The notes under the pieces: model-generated | What the model was told of the DNA's origin: nothing | Database searches by the model: none | The model's input: the letters and a program-made list of their open reading frames with translations, nothing else | Translations under genes and position numbers: made by a program | Part shown: piece by piece, positions 2,117 to 41,898 of the stretch | Layout of the letters: each line of letters starts with the position of its first letter | How positions within the stretch are numbered: position 1 is the stretch's first letter | Source: Pelomyxa schiedti | Lineage: Eukaryota > Protista > Evosea | Direction of reading: 5' to 3' | DNA length: 64,000 bases | Assembly (NCBI GenBank): GCA_020536535.1 | Contig: JAHLWZ010000866.1 | Coordinates: 1 to 64,000 of the forward strand

Positions 2117-3801
2117 ATGTGGTGCAGTGGGCCGGCCGTGGAGCACCAGGTCGCGAGTTCGAGCCCCAACACCACCAACGGCGGGCACAGCAACAGCCAC
2201 ACTAACAACACCAACAGCAGCACCACTGGGTCGAGAAGATCGTCCACTGGCCACCAGCACCAACACCAACACCAGCAGCAACAACAACAGCAGGCACGGG
2301 GGCCGTCGTCGTCGACCACACCCACACCCACACATGGGAGGGCGACGGCAGCCCCAGAAGGCGGAGGGGGGGTGCACGAGACGCCAACCAACGCAACGGC
2401 AACAGCAACAGCGTCGACGTCGGCAACGGCGGCGGCGGCGCCGTCCCTTTCTCCGTCGTCCTCGCCTACTTCCAAATCGACAGCGGCGGCTTCGGGTGGG
2501 AATGGGGGGAACGGGAATGGGAATGGCAATAATGGGACTAGCGGGCATGAGGAGGACGAGCTTGGGATATTGGAGAGGGTGCAGAATTGCCTAGAGTGCC
2601 CAATTTGTTTCGACTTGCTGAGGTTCTTTGTTTGACTAATTTGTTTCATTGATTGTTGTTGATTTTGCCCTTGTTTCTGTTGCTATTCAGAAGAGGGAGT
2701 ACTGATTTAAACACTAAGAAGTTGTGGTATTGTGATAGTAATGAGGTCAATACAGCAGTCTCCGTTTTACTGCATTATAAAAGTAAATAGAAAAGCTGAT
2801 GGAGGCACCAGAGGAATTAATCCGTACCTAAAGGGATCCAAATGAAACAAACTGCGGCCATTCTTTTTGTGAATATTGTATAAACAAGTGTCTGGAGACA
2901 TCCTTCTTGTAAGCTTTCAAGTACTAATGTATTACCGTATCATTGATAATGTTTACAGATGTCCTGTTTGTAAAAAGAGTGCAACACCAGTTCATCCAAG
3001 TTTTACTTTACGAAAGCTTGTTGATCTGTACAAAGAAATCAATCCAGATGCGGAGGTAGGGTTCTTTTTATTTCAAGTACTTTTTTTAATTAAAGTTTCT
3101 AGAATTCTGCTACGTCTCGTTCTTCTGTAGCATCACTGAAAGCAGCAGGAAACTCTGCCTACAACGCCAAAGAATATGCCAAAGCTATTGAACTGTATTC
3201 CGCTGCCATCGCGACTAAGAATTCCACTCCGACATCACCAGCGTACAGAGACCCAACGCTATGGTCCAACAGAGGACAGTGCTACATCAAACTCCGGCAG
3301 TACCAGCGAGCAATCGACGATTTGCGTCGCTGTCTTGAGCTTGATCCCACCTGTTGCAAGGCAATGGTGAGGCTCGCTCTCTGCCAAGAGGCACTGAACA
3401 TGAGGACCGATTGCGTGGAGACCCTGCGGCGGTGCCGGGTGTGTGATGTAGCCAGGGAATTCGCCGCCGAAGTCGACGCCTGCTGGGCCAGAGTCATTGG
3501 AGGCCTTGGGACAAGTGCCCCACTGCCTTCCAGCAACAATGAGCAGCCCAGGGACCAGTTTTGGCGAACGCCGCAAACACAAGCACCAGCACAGCCGCAG
3601 CCGCACAGCAGCAACCGCACATCACCACCACCTCCATCCCAGCACACACAAAGCTCACAACAGCCCGCAAGTAGCACAGCCACTGGCACATATGCCTACA
3701 CACACCCGCTGGGGCCCAATGAGACCAATGCACATAGTACATCCCCACAGAGGCACAGCAGAAGGAACAGAGAGGACGGCAAAGAATGCTGCCTTCAATG
3801 A
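2117..3801 (+). CDS. RING (C3HC4) + TPR protein with C-terminal CaaX (putative prenylated E3 ligase)
   Basis: Low-complexity N-terminus; CPICFDLLR|DPNETNCGHSFCEYC...CPVC; TPRs LKAAGNSAYNAKEYAKAIELYSAAI and LWSNRGQCYIKLRQYQRAIDDLRRCLELDP; ends KECCLQ*. Confidence 0.85.
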
Positions 3802-23250: not shown

Positions 23251-23409
23251 TGCTTTGTCCTTTCAAACGTTGCCGAGTTTTTTTCGTTTGTTTGGTTTTT
23301 ACTTTGTGGATCTTTTGTATTCGTATTCCGAGATTATTACTAACCAAGGTCCATTCACGTAACAAAAAAACCGGTTTTTTGTTCGCGGTGCGTGTTTGGC
23401 CAACACGCA

Positions 23410-24614
23410 TTAAACAAGGGAGGCCGGCGCCTCTGGGGTTTGTGGAATTATGGGTATAGGTAAGAACCATTGCCAGCGGCTGTCACCAAAGTGCTCACAG
23501 ATATTGCTCCTTACTCCTTTATCATATGGCCTGTCACTCTTCTGTGGTAGAGGTAAGTGATTTGGAGGTGTGTGTTAGTTGGTTGTTTTTACCTGTCCAT
23601 AAGGAGTTCTGAAGGACCGGTTTGTCAGGGCCATGAGCTCTTTGCTTGTTAGATTAAACAAGATCATGAAGAAGTGGTGCAAAAAGAGGCAGAAGAGAGT
23701 TAAGCTCTGTGAGGCACCAGAAACAATTGCCAGGTAAAGCAGAATAAGCCACAGGTTTGTCAATGTGGCAAACCCCTTGTTCCCGAAATTTTATGTTGGT
23801 TTTGGATGTTGAGTGGACATGCGCATTAAGTTGTTGTATTTGACGAGTGGGTGAAATACAACTGCTTACTGTGAAATGGAGAATCAATCTAGTAATCAAT
23901 GAAAGGCAAGATATCACCCCTGCCATCGCACTGTACATCACAAAAAGAATGAACAGTTTCCGATTATTTTTCCCTATGCACTGCGGTACCCAAGGGCCTA
24001 GAAGTTAGAAACAGAGTAAATTAAACGTGTGAGTTTGGAGAAGGAAGTACAGTGGTGATCCATTCCAAGAATACACCTTTATTAAACTATTGATGAATGT
24101 TGAGGAGAGAGAAAATAAAGAAGAAGTTGATACTTGTTGCAAACGTGACAATGTCTGGAACGTGGAGGCTTGGCCTGGTTGCATTCCTCACAAAAATCTT
24201 CTTTATTCTTACGAATCCAATTAATTAACACGAAACAAATAGTAAATTGCACAGTGCACTAACCTGCACCTCAGGGGTGTAGCTTGGATCCACGAAACCA
24301 GGTGGCGTTTGACAAAGAATCCAGTAAACCCAGCCAGCCACACAATAAAGTCCAAGGTTGACGACAATTAGAATCAGTGTAGGTGTGCTAAATCGAGCAA
24401 GTGGCGCTCCTGCATAAAACGTAACCCTATATATTGGCATTTTATGAGGACATATACACTATGGTTTTTTTTAATTGTTTTAAATTTTTTTTTTGAATGG
24501 CGTTACAAACAGAGAAAAACAAAACAGGATGATCCCGTAGACAAAACAAACAGCCATGGTCTTTTGGTTGCTCAAATGACGCGCCACTTTGAGCGTAACA
24601 ATAGAGCCCTGCAT
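23410..24614 (-). CDS. DHHC-type protein S-palmitoyltransferase
   Basis: CEECNQAKPPRSRHCHVCN...CILGMDHH|CPWVPQCIGKNN; flanking TM segments; C-terminal PYDKGVRSNICEHFG. Confidence 0.9.
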
Positions 24615-24712
24615 TTCGTATGAATTTTTTCAACAGATTCTTGTAAAAAAAAAAAAAGAATCATTCCTCTTTGTGGTGTTGATGATGGGGCAACTACTAG
24701 TTTTTACAGTCA

Positions 24713-27612
24713 CTACTGAAGGCAACACTTGCGGTCCGGGTCAGGTTCTGGTGTTGTATTTTGGCTACGAACCCAATGCCGCACTGTGTTTTGCATCATG
24801 ATTTGTAATGAAGAGGTGAGTTGCATGGCTGAAATTTCACAGTAGGGAACAGAGAGCTTCCTGCAGTTTCAAAAGCAGGGGAATAAAAAGTTAGTTAGCA
24901 AGTTGGATTGAGATTCAGGTTATGTACCTCGATAGAGCCTCTCCTTCACTCTGACTGATGCACTTGAGGGTGGTGGCAGCTCGAAGGTCTCTGGTGTTGT
25001 GTTTGGTTGGGCAAGTTGTGTTCAATATTGAGCAATACACACATCTTGGTGGCCACAAGAAGATAGGGAGTATCTGGACAGAACCTACGAATTTCTGGAA
25101 CCCATTTAGCCTCCTACTTGAGAATTCAGAGTGGTAAAAGTGGAATAGCCGTACTACACACCACATCCCTAATGCTATCCGGGGAATTAACAGCGAACAT
25201 AACAAGAAACATATCTGTGGAGGGATACCTAAAGCACAAAAGGAATTAAAGCAATGCGGGAACAAAGAAACACAGTTACGATAGTGGTCGCAATCTGTCA
25301 TAGTCTTCCTGTCCAGCCTACGATATAGAGTCAAGGAAGTTCAACACATAGGAAAATTACAGTATCCCAAAAATTGATGGAAAATATTAGCTTGTCAACG
25401 ATAATACTAGTAGAGGGGCTCTCAAATCCGGCTGTATATAGGAAGGTTCTTAGATCGTTGTTAAGCAAGACAAAGATAAAGGATGAAGTCGTATACGGGA
25501 AAATATTGTCTACGCATGTCCTGATGGCAGAAGTTTTACCCACGCCTGGATTTCCAACAAGAACGAGTTTCATGGAAGGCTGAAGAACGCCACCAAATTT
25601 ATGTTTTTGCTTGTGTAATGTATTTCGCCAGGATATCAGCTGGAAGAAGCTTAATCTCCTGTCATAGTTACCATGAAGGTCTACCTGGGATCGTGCGGAT
25701 ATAGGCGGTGACAACACTGTCGTTGCTAATCCTGATGCAAATTCGGTCCATAACTGGTCATTGAAGCAAGTAATACGATACCACTGCTTGCATACAGCAC
25801 CACACCTAGAGTAAAATTGATTCACTGATACTTGAGATTATGCATCACCTGGCTAAGTCACTAGGGTTGTCCAGATACGAAAAAATTTGAAATAAAATAT
25901 CATCAGGGAGTAAGTTGGATCTGACTAACTCCTGCTCCTGGTTTACAGCAACTAACATCCTGCATTTGAGGAGGTCTCCACTTTTGGTTAATACTTGTCC
26001 ACCAGTAATGTACAGATATTCTCTGGTTACCATTTAAAATCCCCTCAACGAAACCTGTACATACCGGAAGATACAAGCAGCTCCAAATGAATGTGACTGG
26101 AAAATAGAACCTGCGTACTTAGGAGAGTGTGTTGTCCACATGTATCGTTGAAGGTCAAGAGTGTGAATGGCGCAAGCAGCCACTTTTTTAGTCTGTGGGA
26201 AACTTCCACCAAATATGTGAAGCTCTCCCGAGCTGGTGTCCAGTGTGTGAGCTGATCCCCACCTTAAACCGGTTTGGTAAAGGGTTATCTCGGTAGTGAT
26301 CAGACCTCGGGAGGGGAACATCACCAGTGACCGTTATTAGCGACCATTGTAAAGTTTCCAAATTGAGCTGCCACAGGTCGCTATCAACGGGATCTCTGCT
26401 GTTGGCGGAAAGACCACCAAAGATATACATCTTTCCATTATACTGACAGGCAGAATGGAAATACCTAACACAGAGTGAGTTGTAGGCGGCAATATCCGCA
26501 TATTACCGTGGGGGGATTTCACCTTGGGCAGCAACTGAATTCCATGATTGGGAGAGGGTATTATACGAATATACGTCATTGCATGTATTCCTGTGCAATA
26601 TGAGAAGTTCATCGACGACATTTGACATACCCATTACAATCATAACCGCCAAATATGAAAATAATATCATTGAAAATGACGGCTGAGTGTCCATACCGCA
26701 TCTGACGACTAGTCACTCAAATGCAAGAAAGGTGAAGTGAACATTTGGAGCATTGTCACTCTGAAAGCCTTGCGGAGATAGGCGTTTCCAAGAATTTGTG
26801 CCCAAAGATAGTTGCCACAAGTCATTCAATATAAAACTGGGCGCTAAGTTTAGGCAGCTGGCAATATTTATGTCGAAAGTTGAATTCCACACGTGTTGCG
26901 GCCGCCAAATATAAACACAGAGTCACAGCTGTGGGAATACACCGAAGAGTGATGAATCCTCCTCAAAGCCTCTGAACAACCAAAAAAAAGGAGGAGAAAA
27001 AAAAAAAAGGCAAGGGAGAATCGCCGCGTCAGTCCAACCAGCGAATTCAGGAGAAAGAATGAAACTATTCGAAAAAGCGGAGTGACGGCTAATCATACTA
27101 TCAGTTCCCCCCGTAGTCGTTAGCTTTTCCCATCTGAACCCAACTCTCTCACCAGTCCCTTCAGGCCACAACCTCCAAACCTCAGATAAGAAAATTCTCT
27201 CAATGGAATTCACAGCCCCTGAGGCTGAGGCTGAGGCTGAGGCTGTGCTTGAGGACAAAGGCAGGCAGGCACCGCCAAACATGACGGCGTGGGACCCATA
27301 ATCGGAGACCGCCAGTGGCATCCCCGTCGGGGCGCCACTGGGCGGGGCCTCGGCCGGCCTGTGGTGCGCCCCGGGGGCAATCCCATAAGCCTGGTACGTC
27401 GGCGGCGGTACCCTTGTCATGCTGTGCCCGTATCTGCACACTGGCACCCCACACACTACGGCTGCTCCTCCTCCAACACTCGATGTCGCTGCCTCCGTCG
27501 TGGAAGTCGTTGGTGCCGATGTTGATGGGACCCCTGGGTCATTGGGCTCAATATCAGTAGACACCAACGACCACCACGAGGCAGTTCCCACGCCCCTTGA
27601 TCGTCGCTTCAT
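24713..27612 (-). CDS. Kelch-repeat + F-box + Rac/Rho GTPase fusion with CaaX
   Basis: Kelch blades (RYGHSM, MYIFGG, LHIFGG); F-box LLPDDILFQIFSYLDNPSDLAR|CGAVCKQW; GTPase KLVLVGNPGVGKT, WDT|AGQEDYDRLRPLS|YP, YCEISA; ends RKCCLQ*. Confidence 0.85.
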
Positions 27613-27844
27613 GAAAAACAGATTGACTTGACATTTGTTCAAGTCTTCTGAAAAAAGCACTTGAGCAAATTTGTGCATTAAGGTGTGTACAGAATTGACC
27701 CTGGAGCCATTCCATGGTATTACTGACTGTGTTACATTTGCATGGCCTGGCAATAGATTTCATGAACTGAGTAGAAGACAGTTGGAAACTCAAATGGTGG
27801 AATGCAAAACAAATACATTTTATTACATAGAGGATAGGCTTTCC

Positions 27845-35212: not shown

Positions 35213-37401
35213 ATGGAAACTCTTGTGCGTCTAGGGGGCACGTGGTCAGGCACTGAGGGAAGTTGGTTGCGAAGGGAGGCTCTTTGGACATTGACGAATG
35301 TAACTACTTACAACAAGCCAACTGCGCATGCCCGTAACCCGATAGAGTGCGTAAATTCCATATTGTGGGAGAAATAATGGCCATTGAGGTGGTTTCTTTT
35401 TTTTGGTTTTTTGTTTGTTTTTGTGTAATGAAATAAATGTAAGTCCTAATGTAGAACTCCATAGTGAACTATGTTTGATGTGGGCACTGGGAGTTGGTGA
35501 TTATGATTCCCAGTACTGGGCAGGGCAATCTGGGCTGGGCTTTGTTCGGGTCTTGCTGTCAGATAGGGCCGGGTCTTCCAAATTTTTTGCAACTGCTCTA
35601 TTGAATGAAGTTGACTCACGTGGATTGCTTCGTGCTTTGAACCAATACAGCGTTTTGAACAAATTGACCATTTTCCATGGTGTTACAATGATACTTGCAG
35701 ACGCAGAAGCAACACAATTACTGGTAAACATACCTGCAGGAGTCTTCACAAATGCCACATTAACTCTGACACTTGCTGCCGATCATTCAAGACTGAACTT
35801 CTCTTCAATTATCCATCACATAGGTCACCTGAAAAAACTAGTTATTCGAGGCATAGACTTGCATGAAGGAGTGAGCGAATTTGCTTCAAGGATCGCATTC
35901 AGTGAGACCCTCTCTGAACTTACTCTTGCCTCATGCCAACTTGACATACATGACGTTTACAGCATAGCCGCTGCTGCTCGTTGCTGCGCTTCATTACACG
36001 CCATTGACTTGAGCGGAAACCCAAGTATTGGGAACGCTGGAGCAGCTTGTCTAGCTGCAGCAATAGCTGGCAAAAACGGTACTCCTTTCACAAGAGTGAA
36101 TCTGCGGGCATGCATGATCCAAAATGGCGGTGCATATGCATTAGCATCAGTGATGAAGACGTTACTGAAGTCTACTGGAGTGCCAACTCTTAGCATTATT
36201 TTGACCAACAACAGTATTTCTGCAGCTTGCATCCGTCGTATTACACAGGAGATTGGAGACAAGTTCCTTTATTCCGCTGTACCTGTTGTCAAGATATGTA
36301 TGATAGGATCTGGCGGTATTGGTACCAAGTCAGGTATTTTACTTTGTACCTCCATCAATCTCATTTGTTTCAGCTCTCACACTAGTATTTCTACAGGTTT
36401 ACAACCAATTCTTTTTACCGTTAACCTCTACCAGAATCACTTTGTCACAGAGTATGACCCGACCATAGAAGATTCCTATAGAAAGTATATGCTGTACTGT
36501 AAGGTTATCGATATGAACCATCTCTTAGGTCATATGTACTTGACGGTCAGCCTATTATCATGGACATTACTGACACAGGTGAGGAGCTGTTTTTGTTGCT
36601 TCTTCTAAAAATTAAATTTCCTGTCTTTTCCAGCTGGACAAGAGGAGTAAGATTTCTTTCCAAAGCACCACTCTTTAACTTTCTCATAGATACTCAGCCA
36701 TGCGGGACACGTAACTAACTTCAGTAATCCTTTGTTTGACATTTGGCAGATATTACCCTCACCACGACGTATTTTGCGTAGGGTATGCGATGTAACTCAT
36801 TATGCAGCTCACTTATACTAAAAGGTATTCAGTAACATCCCGTTCAAGCTTCGAGGATGTAATAAATTTCCATACGGCTATTCTAAGAGTTCGTGCAGCA
36901 TCCGACTATCCCAAGGGTACTAAGAAGCTAATTGTATGTATTCCAATTGCCACAACCCACCAGCTTTGTAGTACTGTTGGGAGGAAAATGTGATCTTGAG
37001 GCTGAAAGAGTAGTCAGTTATGACGAAGGAGTAGCACTTGCACGACAGCTGAATTGTACTTTTTTGGAGGCCAGTTTTTTTTCTCTTGCCAACGAACGCT
37101 CTTATAATCTCTAACCCGTTGTAAAACAAACAAAAAGGTAAGTGCCAAAACGCGAGTCAACGTTGACACCGCATTTGAAACTGCGGCTCGGGCCGGTCTG
37201 GAGGACAGGAGAAAAGGGATAGTCTTTGACCCAGTCCCTTTCCCAATGCTTACCAAGCTCCCGATCCCCTCACTCACCAAAATGAAGGCCACAGAAATCC
37301 CTGTACTTCCTGACATTACTCTATGTTCTACACCAACATCCCCCGAAGAACCACCTCAGAACGAGGACCTAATAGGTATCTACTTCATTTGTACTTGGTG
37401 A
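35213..37401 (+). CDS. RNI-like LRR + C-terminal Ras-family GTPase fusion
   Basis: LRRs (LSELTLASCQL, LHAIDLSGNPSIGNAGA, VNLRACMI); Ras domain GSGGIGTKS|AL, FVTEYDPTIEDSYRK, DT|AGQEE|YSAMRD, GKCDL, FLE|VSAK. Start position approximate. Confidence 0.85.
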
Positions 37402-37504
37402 TACTAAAAATACAAAAAAAAGACTGGGTCAATACTCAAGTCCCATAGAGTACAAAAAGTTCTTGTTCAAAATGAAGTAAAATAACAATATCTTTATTTG
37501 TATA

Positions 37505-40500
37505 TCAAGTTTTTCCCTTTGGGGTGCGTTTGGCCTCCAAGGCCTGTTGTAGTGTTGCTTCTAGCTTTTCGACTGTGGCTAGAAGTTCCGCGTTTTCTTT
37601 TGTGACAGATGCCACCTGTGCTATTGTAGTGCTGTAGCTTGTTGTGAGGTGCTCAATGACAGGTCTCAGTGCAACCCAAGCACATACTGAAGCATGCCGA
37701 CGTAGTGCAGCCCGGGTACCCTTCCAGGGACATTCCAGGTCTTCCGCAACGCAGGGGACTTGGAGAGATTCACATACGGCATCGTGTTGTATTGAACTGT
37801 CCTCCCCTTCAAAGTATTCGCCACAGCCCCGCGGACACACTGTTACAAGAATTGGATTGTGGATGATTTGAGGAATCAGGATACACACATGTGCAGTGGG
37901 CATCTACCCAGGGCCCAGGAAAGGACCGGGGTATGAGTTTCTTGCACTGTGGGCAGGGAACAAGCTTCTTTGGGCATGTTTGGTCATGTCTTTCTTGAGC
38001 ATTTAAAACTAGTCTTGTAGCGCAACCCTCATTAGCACATGCTGAATAAAAAATGAGTACACGAGCTCAATGAGGGGAACCATACTCCTTTGGCACCGTG
38101 TGTTATGTGCTGTGACAAAGATTCCATAGGGCATAGACACTGAGCATGTAGGACAAGTTGTAAGTGCCCTGGGGCACCAGCGTCGATGGGAATCTCGATC
38201 CGAAGCCGAAACCCGTAAACCACACCCATTTTCGCACTCTGAAGGAAGTCATTTGAATGCAAGATACAAGGAGAGCAAACGGTCTGGGCAATTCTGAATG
38301 TGGTTGTTTCGTGATTCACATGGTACTCTTCTCTTGCAAGTTGTACAGATGTAGCACAGGGATTTAAGTTTGGCATGCACATACTTAGGAACAACTTTGG
38401 ATATGGTGCTATCATTTATTTCCGATGCACAAGAGCACATTGCACCCTCAAAAAATGTATCCCGCGAAAAGAAAGGAAGACAAGTACCTTATGCGCGCAA
38501 GATAAACACATCATCTCGCCACAGGTGTGAATTACAGGGTTCACTAATGGATTTCTACAAACAAGGCATTCTAATCCCGGTTCCACGTTTATCCTCTGTA
38601 GTTTGTAAATGTACAATTGAAAAAGAGTGATACATACAGACATCTGGGCGACAGATTGCGCCAGTGCCGATTTCGTTTTCCCATCAATAAAAAATAAAAT
38701 GTCCGTGTTTAAACGGTCATTGCCAAGCATGTCTTCAAGAGCGAAGGAATGGCCACTGAAATTGATGTGAGTTGCTAACTAGGAAGTGGAAAAGAGAAGA
38801 CATTGGTGTGGCAGGTTTCGAACACATCAGGTGTATTTCATTTGGTTCAACAGCTCCCAGAAGCATTCTGCTAAGCTTAGTGGTGACAGTGACATATGAA
38901 GCAGTGCGATTCATATAGCACAAAATTGGAGGTGCTGAAGGTGATGTTGACACTATTTGTGAAGGCTGAGTTGTAATTACTGTCGAAGAAGTTGTGGGTG
39001 TGGTTGAAGAAATATCTGTTCGCTCGGATTTCAACGAGGGTTTAGTTGGTGGTTGTGTTGGTGCATCACATGCAATGAAGGAGATAAATAATCTCTGCAA
39101 GTTGCGGTTGTACCATTCTTGTATTGTTCGGAATGGTGCACTCTGCTTTACTTTCTCAAATACTAAGATATCTACCCAACATTACTTAACATGTAAAACT
39201 AAAGGGTAACAAACCTCCATTTACGAGTTCGTTTTCAAATATCGTTTTTGTGGTGTTTACTGGTTTAACAAGGTCTGGTTTGATTTCCTGGTGAAATTAG
39301 AAGCTGCTATGGTGTGGTGTTTTCAACCTCAAAAATGTTAATTTCTTCGTCTGGACTAAGGCCTGCTAGTTGCCGCATGATAATTGCAAGCTCAGATGAG
39401 ATTTGCTTGGGTTGTGCATAGTAACAGCCTATGTACCTGAAAAATGGTGAGGAATCGCATTACACGAAGTAGTATACCGAGGTTCTTTTTGGGTTATAGG
39501 GTTGTAGTATTTGAAGAATAAAAGTGAGTGATGATTAGCATCAGGAAATGCTGCGAAATTTTCCGACTGGTTTCTCATCAGTGATGCATGTTAGAGTTAC
39601 TCAGAATTCATTCACCTGAATTGAAGGAGGCTTGCTTTCTGAGACTTGGGCAAAAATGAATATGTCCGGGTCATTCATCCTTCAGTGGGGTCAGTGTGAA
39701 ACATTCCCAGTAGATGGGTACTACCGTATGATATCATCTGAGGGAGGGACAGGTTCATGGGGCCGTACTGTTAGATTCTGTCTTGTTACGAACATCCACA
39801 GTCTTAGCAAACCCATGTCAACATCAAGCTGCTGTGCACATAATCTCTTGGGAAATGTTATTGAGAGATAGTAGAAATAATTTCAACTTGAAGAGCATTT
39901 CCGGTAATGCCCTGTTTAACTCGGAAACAACACTCAGACTGAAGAGGAATGAGCCCACATCCATGGTGACAGCAAAAGGTTGCCTCAGTAGCAAGCCTAA
40001 CAGAGACCACTAGGAGTGTGTTAAAGGGGAAAACAATGTAGAGTAGATTTACTGGGTGGTGGTGACACTTCAATTCTTATTGGAACAACACAAAAAGTAA
40101 CGGTTTCATTTGCAGAAAAGAAACCAGGATCTTGTTTTAACAGGGAAATCGGAACGAATTCAGTAAAGCCCCAATCCAGTTCCGAGTCAGCGTTGGTGAA
40201 CACATGGCGTGCCTCTATTTTAGTTTTGGCAAAGTGAGATGTGAGAAAGATTTGTGTTCTTAAGTGTATCACACCAAAACGTAGAGTTTTTTCCGAGTCA
40301 ACATTGTGAATCATTTCTACGCGAAATTTTGCCTCCACAGTCCACTCTGGAACTTGGAGTTTGCCTAGTTCCAGGTACACTGCCACATTTCTTTTGACTT
40401 TGTGCTCGTTCCCGCGTGGAAACACGCGCAATCTCCTTTTGGTGATGTTGGCACGAAAGCTACGCTTTCAAGAGATCTGGCCGTACCAACATACGTCTTT

Positions 40501-40623
40501 ATACCACCATTCGTCGCTGCACACGGACTCTTCCTCGCCACTTAAAAACCGAGGAACACAAAACGTGAGCCGACACGGCTCTTGTGGATCTTGTGGGCGG
40601 TCCAGCACCCCACCTCTCAACAT
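37505..40623 (-). CDS. MATH + USP7-type UBL1-3 + RING + TRAF zinc fingers + coiled coil (no USP catalytic domain)
   Basis: MATH WRLRVFPRG...VAVYL...DWGFTEFV; UBL1 VRLATEATFCCHHG...LRLWMFVTRQNLTVRP; UBL2 LLFFKYYNP...IFEEIKP...ELVNGDILVFEK; RING CLVC...CGEMMCLSC; TRAF-type CxxxC...H...C repeats. The frame is continuous through GT-AG introns at the junctions checked. Confidence 0.8.
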
Positions 40624-40770: not shown

Positions 40771-41898
40771 TCACAGGTTTTTGAGCCATGAACATAGCAG
40801 AGAGAAAGTGATAGAGTTGGGTCCAGGAATCAGCAACTGTTGCACAGCTGTTTTTGTGGTTTTGGCTGCTGTTCCCCACAGTACCTCCAAATCATTGGCA
40901 ACTGATTCTGCAGAAACCCATTTGGCAGATACAAGTTCCTTCGGATTGAACTCGACAGACTCAGGCTGGGGAGAAACGGCCGTAACGAGGAATCCCACAA
41001 TCAATTGAGACCCAAATGGCGGTGCCAGAGGCATAGATGCACAATAGGTAAACGTGGAGTCGTCCAGAGCAACACCTGTCTCTTCTTTTACTTCTCTCGC
41101 TGCTCCTTCTTCTAGTGTCTCACCAGGTTCCAAGTATCCAGTTACACATGCATGTACTCCTGTATAAATGTGAGTGGCGAAGCAAAAAAGACAGCTAACC
41201 TGCTTGGTTGTTGCAGACAAGGAGGCATCTCTTCTTATCGGGATGTAAGACGAGGGCTGCTACAATTGGGTCTGTTCGGAGCCAGTGCTGGGCGCAGCAG
41301 GTCAGGTTCTGGCATACCCGGTTTGGAGTGGATGCACTTGAAGTACCGCAACAAGAACCGCACCTGTTGCAGTGCAAGTATGTATAATGAAAGTGAATCA
41401 GGTTTTTTGCCTTTAACTGTTAGTCCTCTAGACAGGAAATTCTTCTTTGGAGAAGTGACTCACAAAAGATATAAACGACGCCTCGGCAGTGTTCATCTTC
41501 CCGGTAACCCTCAGCCAGTTCCCGCCGTTACAAAAGAACGCCGAGTCAGCCATGCCGCACTCCCTAGACTTCACAAAGCCAACCAATGGCTGCGTGACAC
41601 TGCTATTGACCACCACTCCAAGCAACTCAGACCTGCTACTGCACGCCACAGGGATTCTCTTCACGCTCGCCACCCTGCCCAAGACCACTTCCAGCACCCT
41701 GCCTCCGCTGCCTAGATATCCCCTCCTTGTCAAGTCGGCGGCCTCCCACACAAACGTGGTTGCAGAACTCCACCCGTTACGAACGACTACCAGCGGCCAC
41801 ATTTGCTCATCGAACAACACACAGTACTGCTTTGTTGCTGTTGCAGTTGCAGTTGCAGGTGCTGCTGCTGGAATAACTGTCGAATCAGTGGGTGGCAT
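40771..41898 (-). CDS. NudC-like NAD(H) diphosphatase (NUDT12/13/NPY1 family Nudix)
   Basis: Zn ribbon CNRCG...VCQNLTC; RTDPIV; Nudix box GYLEPGETLEEGAAREVKEETG; divergent SQPWPFP motif (SMPLAPPFGSQL). Confidence 0.85.

Follow-up and report, generated by a model that had tools for sequence, protein, structure and literature searches.

A gene on the minus strand of a 64,000-nucleotide stretch of Pelomyxa schiedti DNA (GenBank assembly GCA_020536535.1, contig JAHLWZ010000866.1, here C866, positions 1 to 64,000; this whole stretch is the window) encodes a protein in which the apparent substrate-docking half of the deubiquitinase USP7 runs on into a RING-like domain, TRAF-type zinc fingers and a coiled coil. 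The coding region, 37505..40623, is one intact gene with 16 exons and 15 introns, extending from an ATG at 40623 to a TGA at 37507-37505, and its product, P0001, has 813 amino acids (aa). Judged by sequence and predicted fold, the first 510 or so residues correspond to the part of USP7 that docks substrates and is not catalytic, that is, its MATH domain and ubiquitin-like domains 1 to 3 (UBL1-3). Three diverged copies of the chimeric protein, on contigs C866, C920 and C214, form a small gene family. An earlier note on this DNA, made from the sequence alone, had described a USP7 scaffold with the deubiquitinase domain removed and a RING/TRAF module appended, and this description is borne out by a single gene, by the lack of a match to the USP catalytic domain (UCH) and by diverged copies with the same domain order. 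The reading favoured here, to which an even chance is assigned, is that USP7 docking parts on a RING-TRAF chassis produce a ubiquitin ligase, or a ligase adaptor, for USP7-type targets.

P. schiedti is an anaerobic amoeba, and the introns in this eukaryotic DNA are of the GT-AG type and very short. P0001 is present at NCBI as an 813-aa P. schiedti entry with the automatically assigned name 'ICP0-binding domain of Ubiquitin-specific protease 7', and mapping of this deposited protein by script matches it residue for residue to the minus strand of the window, on which all features of the gene given below lie. Each of the 15 introns has GT-AG ends and is 40-60 nt long. A phmmer search of 1.84 billion representative proteins with the MATH-coding piece (40054-40464, minus) returns P0001 at 100% identity. 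The domain order listed in the earlier note (MATH, UBLs, a UBL3-like segment, RING, TRAF fingers and coiled coil) is recovered at the expected positions by Pfam, by hhalign and by the predicted fold.

The MATH (TRAF-like) domain, aa 17-153, is encoded at 40053..40575 by exons 1-3, which are separated by introns 40486-40436 and 40274-40215. It retains the peptide-binding strand DWGF (D113-F116), and it is matched by Pfam MATH_2 both in an exon-by-exon search (2e-11) and in the full-length protein (7e-15 at aa 30-141). In a phmmer search of the PDB sequences, aa 18-142 align to residues 70-193 of human USP7 as the top match, and the best match to the predicted fold in Foldseek is the USP7 TRAF domain 2xxn (E 3.8e-9), ahead of SPOP. 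Derivation of this domain from a TRAF gene was considered and ruled out, given that USP7 is the best match and that an intron within the MATH domain is common to canonical USP7. The MATH domain is joined to UBL1, as claimed previously, by one 43-nt intron: intron 3 (40010..40052, read 40052-40010 on the minus strand; GTAAAT...CCTAG) is a phase-1 GT-AG intron that connects ...IRIEVSPPP to (M)VSVRLATEATFCCHHG, and it occupies the place of the protease-coding exons in canonical USP7.

The USP7-type UBLs follow in order. UBL1 (aa 154-247, 39643..40009; VSVRLATEATF... LRLWMFVTRQNLTVRPHE...) is identified by PDB phmmer, by hhalign and by AlphaFold2 (AF2) with Foldseek, and UBL2 (aa ~262-390, 39041..39551; LLFFKYYNP ... 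EEIKP ... ELVNGDILVFEK) by the Pfam family USP7_ICP0_bdg. The latter family (PF12436) gives the USP7 UBL profile match: it covers aa 208-390 of P0001 at 8e-33 and, exon by exon, appears as four collinear pieces at profile positions 1-24, 57-76, 77-115 and 139-188. A Ser/Thr/Pro-rich linker (aa 391-422, 38945..39040) is predicted to be disordered, with a predicted local distance difference test score (pLDDT) below 50 for aa 393-422 in the AF2 model, and it falls in a gap in the paralogue P0003. UBL3 (aa 423-509, 38638..38944) is supported by hhalign, by an AF2 beta-grasp fold at aa 429-493 and by the Foldseek matches 5c6d, 4wph and 5gg4. Over the three UBLs, aa 156-390 align to human USP7 566-810 in the PDB phmmer search, and hhalign against a profile of eight canonical USP7s pairs aa 155-492 with USP7 565-886 (probability 99.7, E 3e-26). 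Given that this alignment runs to aa 492, or USP7 886, UBL3 is present and the homology to USP7 stops there. The AF2 model of aa 1-510 has a mean pLDDT of 82.8 and a predicted template modelling score (pTM) of 0.70, and its top Foldseek matches are all USP7 (9a9w, 5c6d, 4wph and 5gg4), with a TM score of ~0.75 over UBL1-3.

The catalytic part of USP7 is missing. The protease domain of human USP7 spans approximately residues 208-560. The PDB alignments of P0001 end at USP7 193 and resume at 566, such that a region of ~370 residues in the human protein corresponds to ~13 residues between the MATH and UBL1 matches. UCH (PF00443) has no match in P0001 or in P0003 in full-length Pfam searches, and a scan of the 52-Mb genome in all six frames finds none on C866 and 119 elsewhere. 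Taken together, the exon-wise and full-length Pfam searches match MATH, USP7_ICP0_bdg, half of the RING and zf-TRAF, and leave UCH unmatched. The loss extends further than the earlier note had proposed: by sequence, P0001 also lacks UBL4-5 and the activating tail at the C-terminus of USP7, as USP7_C2 (PF14533; UBL4-5) has no Pfam match in it and the hhalign homology stops at UBL3. The RING begins at aa 517, and P0001 has no room for a USP catalytic domain or for UBL4-5.

The RING-like domain, aa 517-553, is encoded at 38423..38574 and is split by an intron at 38487-38447, with a Pfam zf-C3HC4_3 match on the exon. In P0001 the zinc-ligand positions are C519, C522, (H532), C534, E536 in place of His, C539, C542 and C549-x-C551, whereas the motif of the family is C-x2-C-x9-H-T-C-G-E-x2-C-x2-C, the intron, and then C-P-x-C. 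In profile alignments 'CGe' occupies the place of the canonical 'CGH', so the His that should serve as fourth ligand is the one that is missing. Both irregularities that had been pointed out in the earlier note, CGE for CGH and a terminal CSC, are therefore present in P0001. The RING family profile nevertheless matches active RING-type ubiquitin ligases (E3s), namely LNX2 (5e-5), TRIM21, TRIM5, TRAF6 and RNF125.

Seven TRAF-type CCHC zinc fingers (aa 576-755, 37682..38356) are assigned from the Pfam families zf-TRAF_2 and Sina_ZnF and from Foldseek. Exon-wise Pfam matches zf-TRAF_2 to the last exon at 2.8e-6 and also finds Sina_ZnF in the finger exons, and zf-TRAF_2 is weakly matched at aa 701-757 of the full-length protein. 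Exons 14 and 15 are 153 nt each, are bounded on both sides by phase-1 introns and encode two fingers apiece. The C-terminal coiled coil (aa 756-807, 37526..37681) is modelled by AF2 as a single helix with pLDDT 93-98 and has weak coiled-coil matches in Pfam. The model of aa 505-813, built on a trimmed family set given that exon fragments of repeated fingers misalign, and graded as moderate only, has a mean pLDDT of 73.7 and contains the first half of the RING, seven beta-beta-alpha finger units and a 50-residue helix with pLDDT >90. Its best fold match in Foldseek is the RING-ZnF structure of TRAF6, 3hcs (E 6.7e-6). P0001 stops six residues past the coiled coil and has no MATH domain there, such that its sole MATH domain is the N-terminal one of USP7 type.

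A second copy of the gene, at C920:29771-33010, encodes the 803-aa P0003, which keeps the domain order of P0001 at 31% identity. Its 16 exons were mapped exactly, and 15/15 introns have the same phase and fall at the same alignment column as those of P0001, where a match was accepted within three columns if the alignment was gapped. The correspondence includes a 42-nt phase-1 intron at the same column as the 43-nt intron 3. A third and more divergent copy, at ~C214:34000-37300 (+) (L011:574-3763), has MATH, UBL, RING, TRAF fingers and coiled coil in collinear order, with NWGF for DWGF in the MATH domain and HSTCGEMLC in the RING; it had been overlooked by a Pfam-based genome scan. Divergence between P0001 and P0003 is even, at 29-33% identity from the MATH domain through the TRAF fingers, with 17% in the coiled coil. 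Within aa 510-760, 33 of 40 Cys and His residues are identical between the two proteins, whereas for all other residues the count is 47 of 211 (Fisher p = 6e-13), and P0003 retains the seven CCHC units.

These copies bear on whether the gene is real. Neighbouring MATH-UBL and RING-TRAF genes could have been merged, or the protease could have been lost by misassembly, and it counts in favour of such an artefact that the P. schiedti gene models rest on a single-cell assembly and on Augustus predictions, which PASA and EVM refined by means of transcriptome data (PMC8887013). The reading frame argues otherwise, as a stop-free stretch on the minus strand at 38419..38778 holds the end of UBL3 (…EDMLGNDRLNTDILFFIDG…), intron 11 (38637-38596; 42 nt, in frame and stop-free) and the first half of the RING (…CLVCRNPLVNPVIHTCGEMMCLSC…), and an ATG-started open reading frame at 38416-38730 lies in the same frame. 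The USP7-derived and TRAF-derived parts are therefore joined in one frame whether or not intron 11 is spliced. In addition, the MATH and UBL1 exons are just 43 nt apart, the same order recurs at three independent loci on different contigs, and all 15 intron positions are equal in two copies that are only 31% identical. An artefact of this kind, whether by merger or by misassembly, is considered very improbable and largely refuted, and was rejected.

A decaying relic of a USP7 duplicate would likewise have lost its catalytic domain and might carry an atypical RING, as this gene does. A pseudogene would not be expected, however, to show 16 open exons with intact GT-AG sites in two copies at 31% identity, zinc ligands conserved far above background, or retained docking-groove residues; it is accordingly given little credence, and was rejected on the open exons, the zinc-ligand conservation and the docking groove. 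Even divergence, conserved Cys and His residues and shared introns together are hard to square with misassembly, merged genes or a pseudogene alike.

The favoured reading, of a ligase or ligase adaptor for USP7-type targets, can be set out as a sequence of steps. At the DNA level, the USP7 exons flanking the protease region would have been joined, and the USP7 tail exchanged for exons encoding the RING, TRAF fingers and coiled coil. The coiled coil would oligomerise the protein, while the MATH domain and UBL1-2 would dock proteins that carry USP7-type motifs (P/AxxS and KxxxK). The RING-ZnF head would then recruit a ubiquitin-conjugating enzyme (E2), and docked proteins would be ubiquitinated rather than deubiquitinated, such that the product might oppose or complement canonical USP7. 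The structural and evolutionary side of this account is well supported; the conversion of an eraser into a writer that acts on USP7-type substrates is a plausible prediction from the sequence.

The docking surfaces were compared through the alignment of P0001 with human USP7 from the PDB phmmer search, at residues that presumably form the MATH groove and the UBL2 acidic patch of USP7. In the groove, R104, E162, D164, W165 and F167 of USP7 are identical in P0001 (R53, E111, D113, W114 and F116), and F118 is replaced by Tyr (Y66). In the acidic patch, E759 and D764 are kept (E342 and D347) and are invariant between P0001 and P0003.

Several features weigh against the ligase reading. In the MATH domain, I154 of USP7 is replaced by Ala in P0001, and in the UBL2 acidic patch two of the four residues checked (D758 and D762) are Asn. 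The earlier claim that both docking surfaces are kept thus stands for most of the groove and for E759 and D764, and fails at I154, D758 and D762. In the RING, the fourth-ligand position holds Glu in P0001 and the C214 copy and Ala in P0003, with His in no copy. P0001 alone ends its RING with C-S-C rather than C-P-x-C, and AF2 gives aa 547-564 a pLDDT below 50 and does not place the last Cys pair with confidence, compared with ~78 for the first half of the RING. The missing His, the terminal C-S-C and the low AF2 confidence put the predicted ligase competence in doubt, and the prediction is least certain for P0001, the copy in the window.

These features of the RING support the main rival to the ligase reading, which is that the RING is catalytically dead and that the protein acts as an oligomeric scaffold or decoy, either competing with canonical USP7 for its motifs or bringing clients to partners of the TRAF fingers. 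Adaptor TRAF proteins with non-functional or absent RINGs are known, and this outcome is regarded as a real possibility, if one held with some reserve. Set against it, the other seven ligand positions, along with the His that precedes the third Cys, are retained in copies with ~30% identity, and the profile still matches the active E3s LNX2, TRIM21 and TRAF6. The variant is also retained in the wider RING-TRAF-Neuralized family of this genome (described below), which speaks for a functioning form of RING over decay. In that family the fourth-ligand position is Glu on C710 and C464 and Gly on C178 (motif CTGW). The conserved His lies two residues before the third Cys (three on C214), and might serve as a substitute zinc ligand. 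A bolder extension of the ligase reading holds that the same degrons (P/AxxS on the MATH domain and KxxxK on UBL2) are read by one eraser and three writers, as a paired on/off switch produced by exon shuffling, with the variant RING and its His before the third Cys as a working zinc arrangement not yet described; this is rather doubtful and is offered tentatively.

The origin of the N-terminal half can be traced in the same genome, where a canonical USP7 gene on C72 (~23300-27700) encodes UCH between MATH and USP7_ICP0_bdg, followed by UBL4-5. The genes on C72 and C214 were analysed exon by exon, and the intron phases of the C72 gene were read from adjacent exon ends. Five introns are common to the C72 gene and the fused genes: a phase-1 intron in the MATH domain (KY(G)|LKHTF and RF(E)|ARHVF, respectively), at the start of UBL1, a phase-1 intron that splits the codon three residues ahead of V[KR][IL]ATE, a phase-0 intron within UBL1 (SQLN|EFVT and NALQ|RLCA), a phase-0 intron at LILYE|EVRPS and NIFE|EIKP, and a phase-1 intron at LRTG|DIIIF and LVNG|DILVF. 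Two others nearly coincide, one of phase 0 before FFKYY and one of phase 2 after it. These shared introns, together with the best sequence and fold matches of the MATH domain and UBLs, support derivation of the N-terminal half from USP7. A second gene with UCH and USP7-type UBLs occurs on C810 (~106500-109100, minus); tblastn with a USP7 query found no MATH domain in it.

The protease of the C72 gene is encoded between introns 24174-24218 (after MATH) and 25673-25718 (before UBL1). Where C72 has these protease exons, the fused genes have a single intron of 42-43 nt, the acceptor side of which matches exactly. The donor side fits less well with such an origin, as the donor of the junction intron is at phase 1 in the fused genes and at phase 2 in C72, at the same codon position. 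A plain deletion from intron to intron would therefore need a one-base shift of the donor. Removal of the protease by intron-to-intron deletion is still considered likely from this comparison.

The C-terminal half also has relatives in the genome, where the last exon of P0001 is matched many times. The closest relatives that were examined in full, on C710, C464 and C178, combine the RING, TRAF fingers and coiled coil with a C-terminal Neuralized homology domain (PF07177; 2.8e-8 on C710 and 8.9e-5 on C178, the latter just below Pfam's own cut-off). In the RING-TRAF part of the C710 gene, the only one compared in this respect, intron positions and phases (0, 1, 1) are as in the fused genes. The fused genes carry one more of the 153-nt, phase 1-1, two-finger exons than the Neuralized-type genes do. 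The RING-TRAF-coiled-coil module thus appears, from these sequences, to be a local ligase-type chassis that is combined with varied recognition domains. Introns shared with both the C72 USP7 and the RING-TRAF-Neuralized genes point to exon-level assembly from the two, and the gene looks as much like a chassis that gained a new recognition module as like a converted USP7. The combination of RING, TRAF fingers, coiled coil and Neuralized (C710, L015:2364-3746; C464, L014; C178, L013) may itself be unusual. Two equal-scoring matches to the exon for the TRAF finger and coiled coil lie near the ends of the 139-kb contig C801, at 2912-3244 (+) and 135839-136171 (-); this opposed pair might reflect either an inverted duplication or an error of assembly.

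Two genes flank the fused gene in the window. The last exon of the upstream neighbour (40771-41220, minus) encodes a Nudix box (GYLEPGETLEEGAAREVKEETG), and since only ~150 nt separate the stop codon of this neighbour from the start codon of the fused gene, the promoter region of the latter is very short. The convergent downstream neighbour (35403-37448, plus) encodes leucine-rich repeats and a Ras-like GTPase (YDPTIEDSYRK).

In the searches that were run, the fusion is known only from P. schiedti. Among the 1.84 billion representatives searched exhaustively by phmmer with the MATH piece, this architecture was found only in P0001 and P0003. Word-indexed searches with the full length, with the RING-TRAF region and with a two-sequence profile yielded nothing beyond canonical USP7s and the query itself, and are weak evidence of absence because they did not recover P0003 either. 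The ESM Atlas holds no cluster that combines USP7-docking and RING-TRAF parts. A first metagenome scan found nothing; a second gave 25 UBL-positive loci, none with RING-TRAF downstream, of which L039 and L040 match the UBLs only, and the metagenome loci on long enough contigs have the canonical MATH-UCH-UBL1-5 order. Text searches of the literature found no paper that describes this fusion, and neither TRAF nor MATH proteins are discussed in the Mastigamoeba genome paper.

Deubiquitinases and ligases with common targets usually meet as separate proteins, as USP7 does with MDM2, ICP0, UHRF1 and TRIM27. Here, the target-recognition half of a deubiquitinase has apparently been transferred, at the level of the gene, to a ligase-type chassis, and has been kept in three copies. 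The case is a clear example of exon shuffling in which the intron traces are still visible. If the RING is active, it would be a natural experiment in which substrate specificity is re-used with the opposite enzymatic sign, it would resemble engineered degraders made from deubiquitinase-binding modules, and it would offer a handle on the role of USP7-type docking motifs in an early-branching amoebozoan. The reach of the finding is limited to a single little-studied organism, and all of the component domains were already known.

Among known systems, P0001 is closest in its N-terminal half to USP7/HAUSP (plant UBP12/13 and yeast Ubp15; peptidase C19), with which it shares an N-terminal MATH domain with DWGF and UBL1-3 in the same order. 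It differs in that it is without the USP catalytic domain, UBL4-5 and the C-terminal activating peptide, and in that UBL3 leads into the RING-like domain, the TRAF zinc fingers and the coiled coil. A missing protease by itself has a parallel elsewhere: the UBP12-like proteins P0011 and P0017 of Camellia sinensis, which are predicted models only, also have MATH directly before the USP7 UBLs and no Pfam UCH, and to judge by sequence they represent an independent protease loss in a USP7 relative. Unlike P0001, they keep UBL4-5 (USP7_C2), and the RING, TRAF fingers and coiled coil are absent from them.

The C-terminal half, with its RING-like domain, row of CCHC fingers and coiled coil, recalls TRAF6, TRAF2 and the Dictyostelium-type TRAF-like proteins, which likewise contain a MATH domain. 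In TRAFs, however, the MATH domain comes after the coiled coil, whereas in P0001 it is N-terminal and of USP7 type, with three UBLs before the RING, and the RING lacks the canonical His. The RING-TRAF-Neuralized genes of P. schiedti share with P0001 the variant RING (C-x2-C...H-T-C-G-E-x2-C-x2-C...C-P-x-C), the fingers and the coiled coil, but they have a C-terminal Neuralized domain, no MATH or UBL domains and one two-finger exon fewer. A parallel for the proposed use of the MATH domain is provided by SPOP, the MATH-BTB adaptor of CUL3 ligases and the second-best match to the MATH domain of P0001, in which the same MATH subtype presents substrates to a ligase. SPOP recruits its cullin via the BTB domain and has neither a RING nor UBLs of its own.

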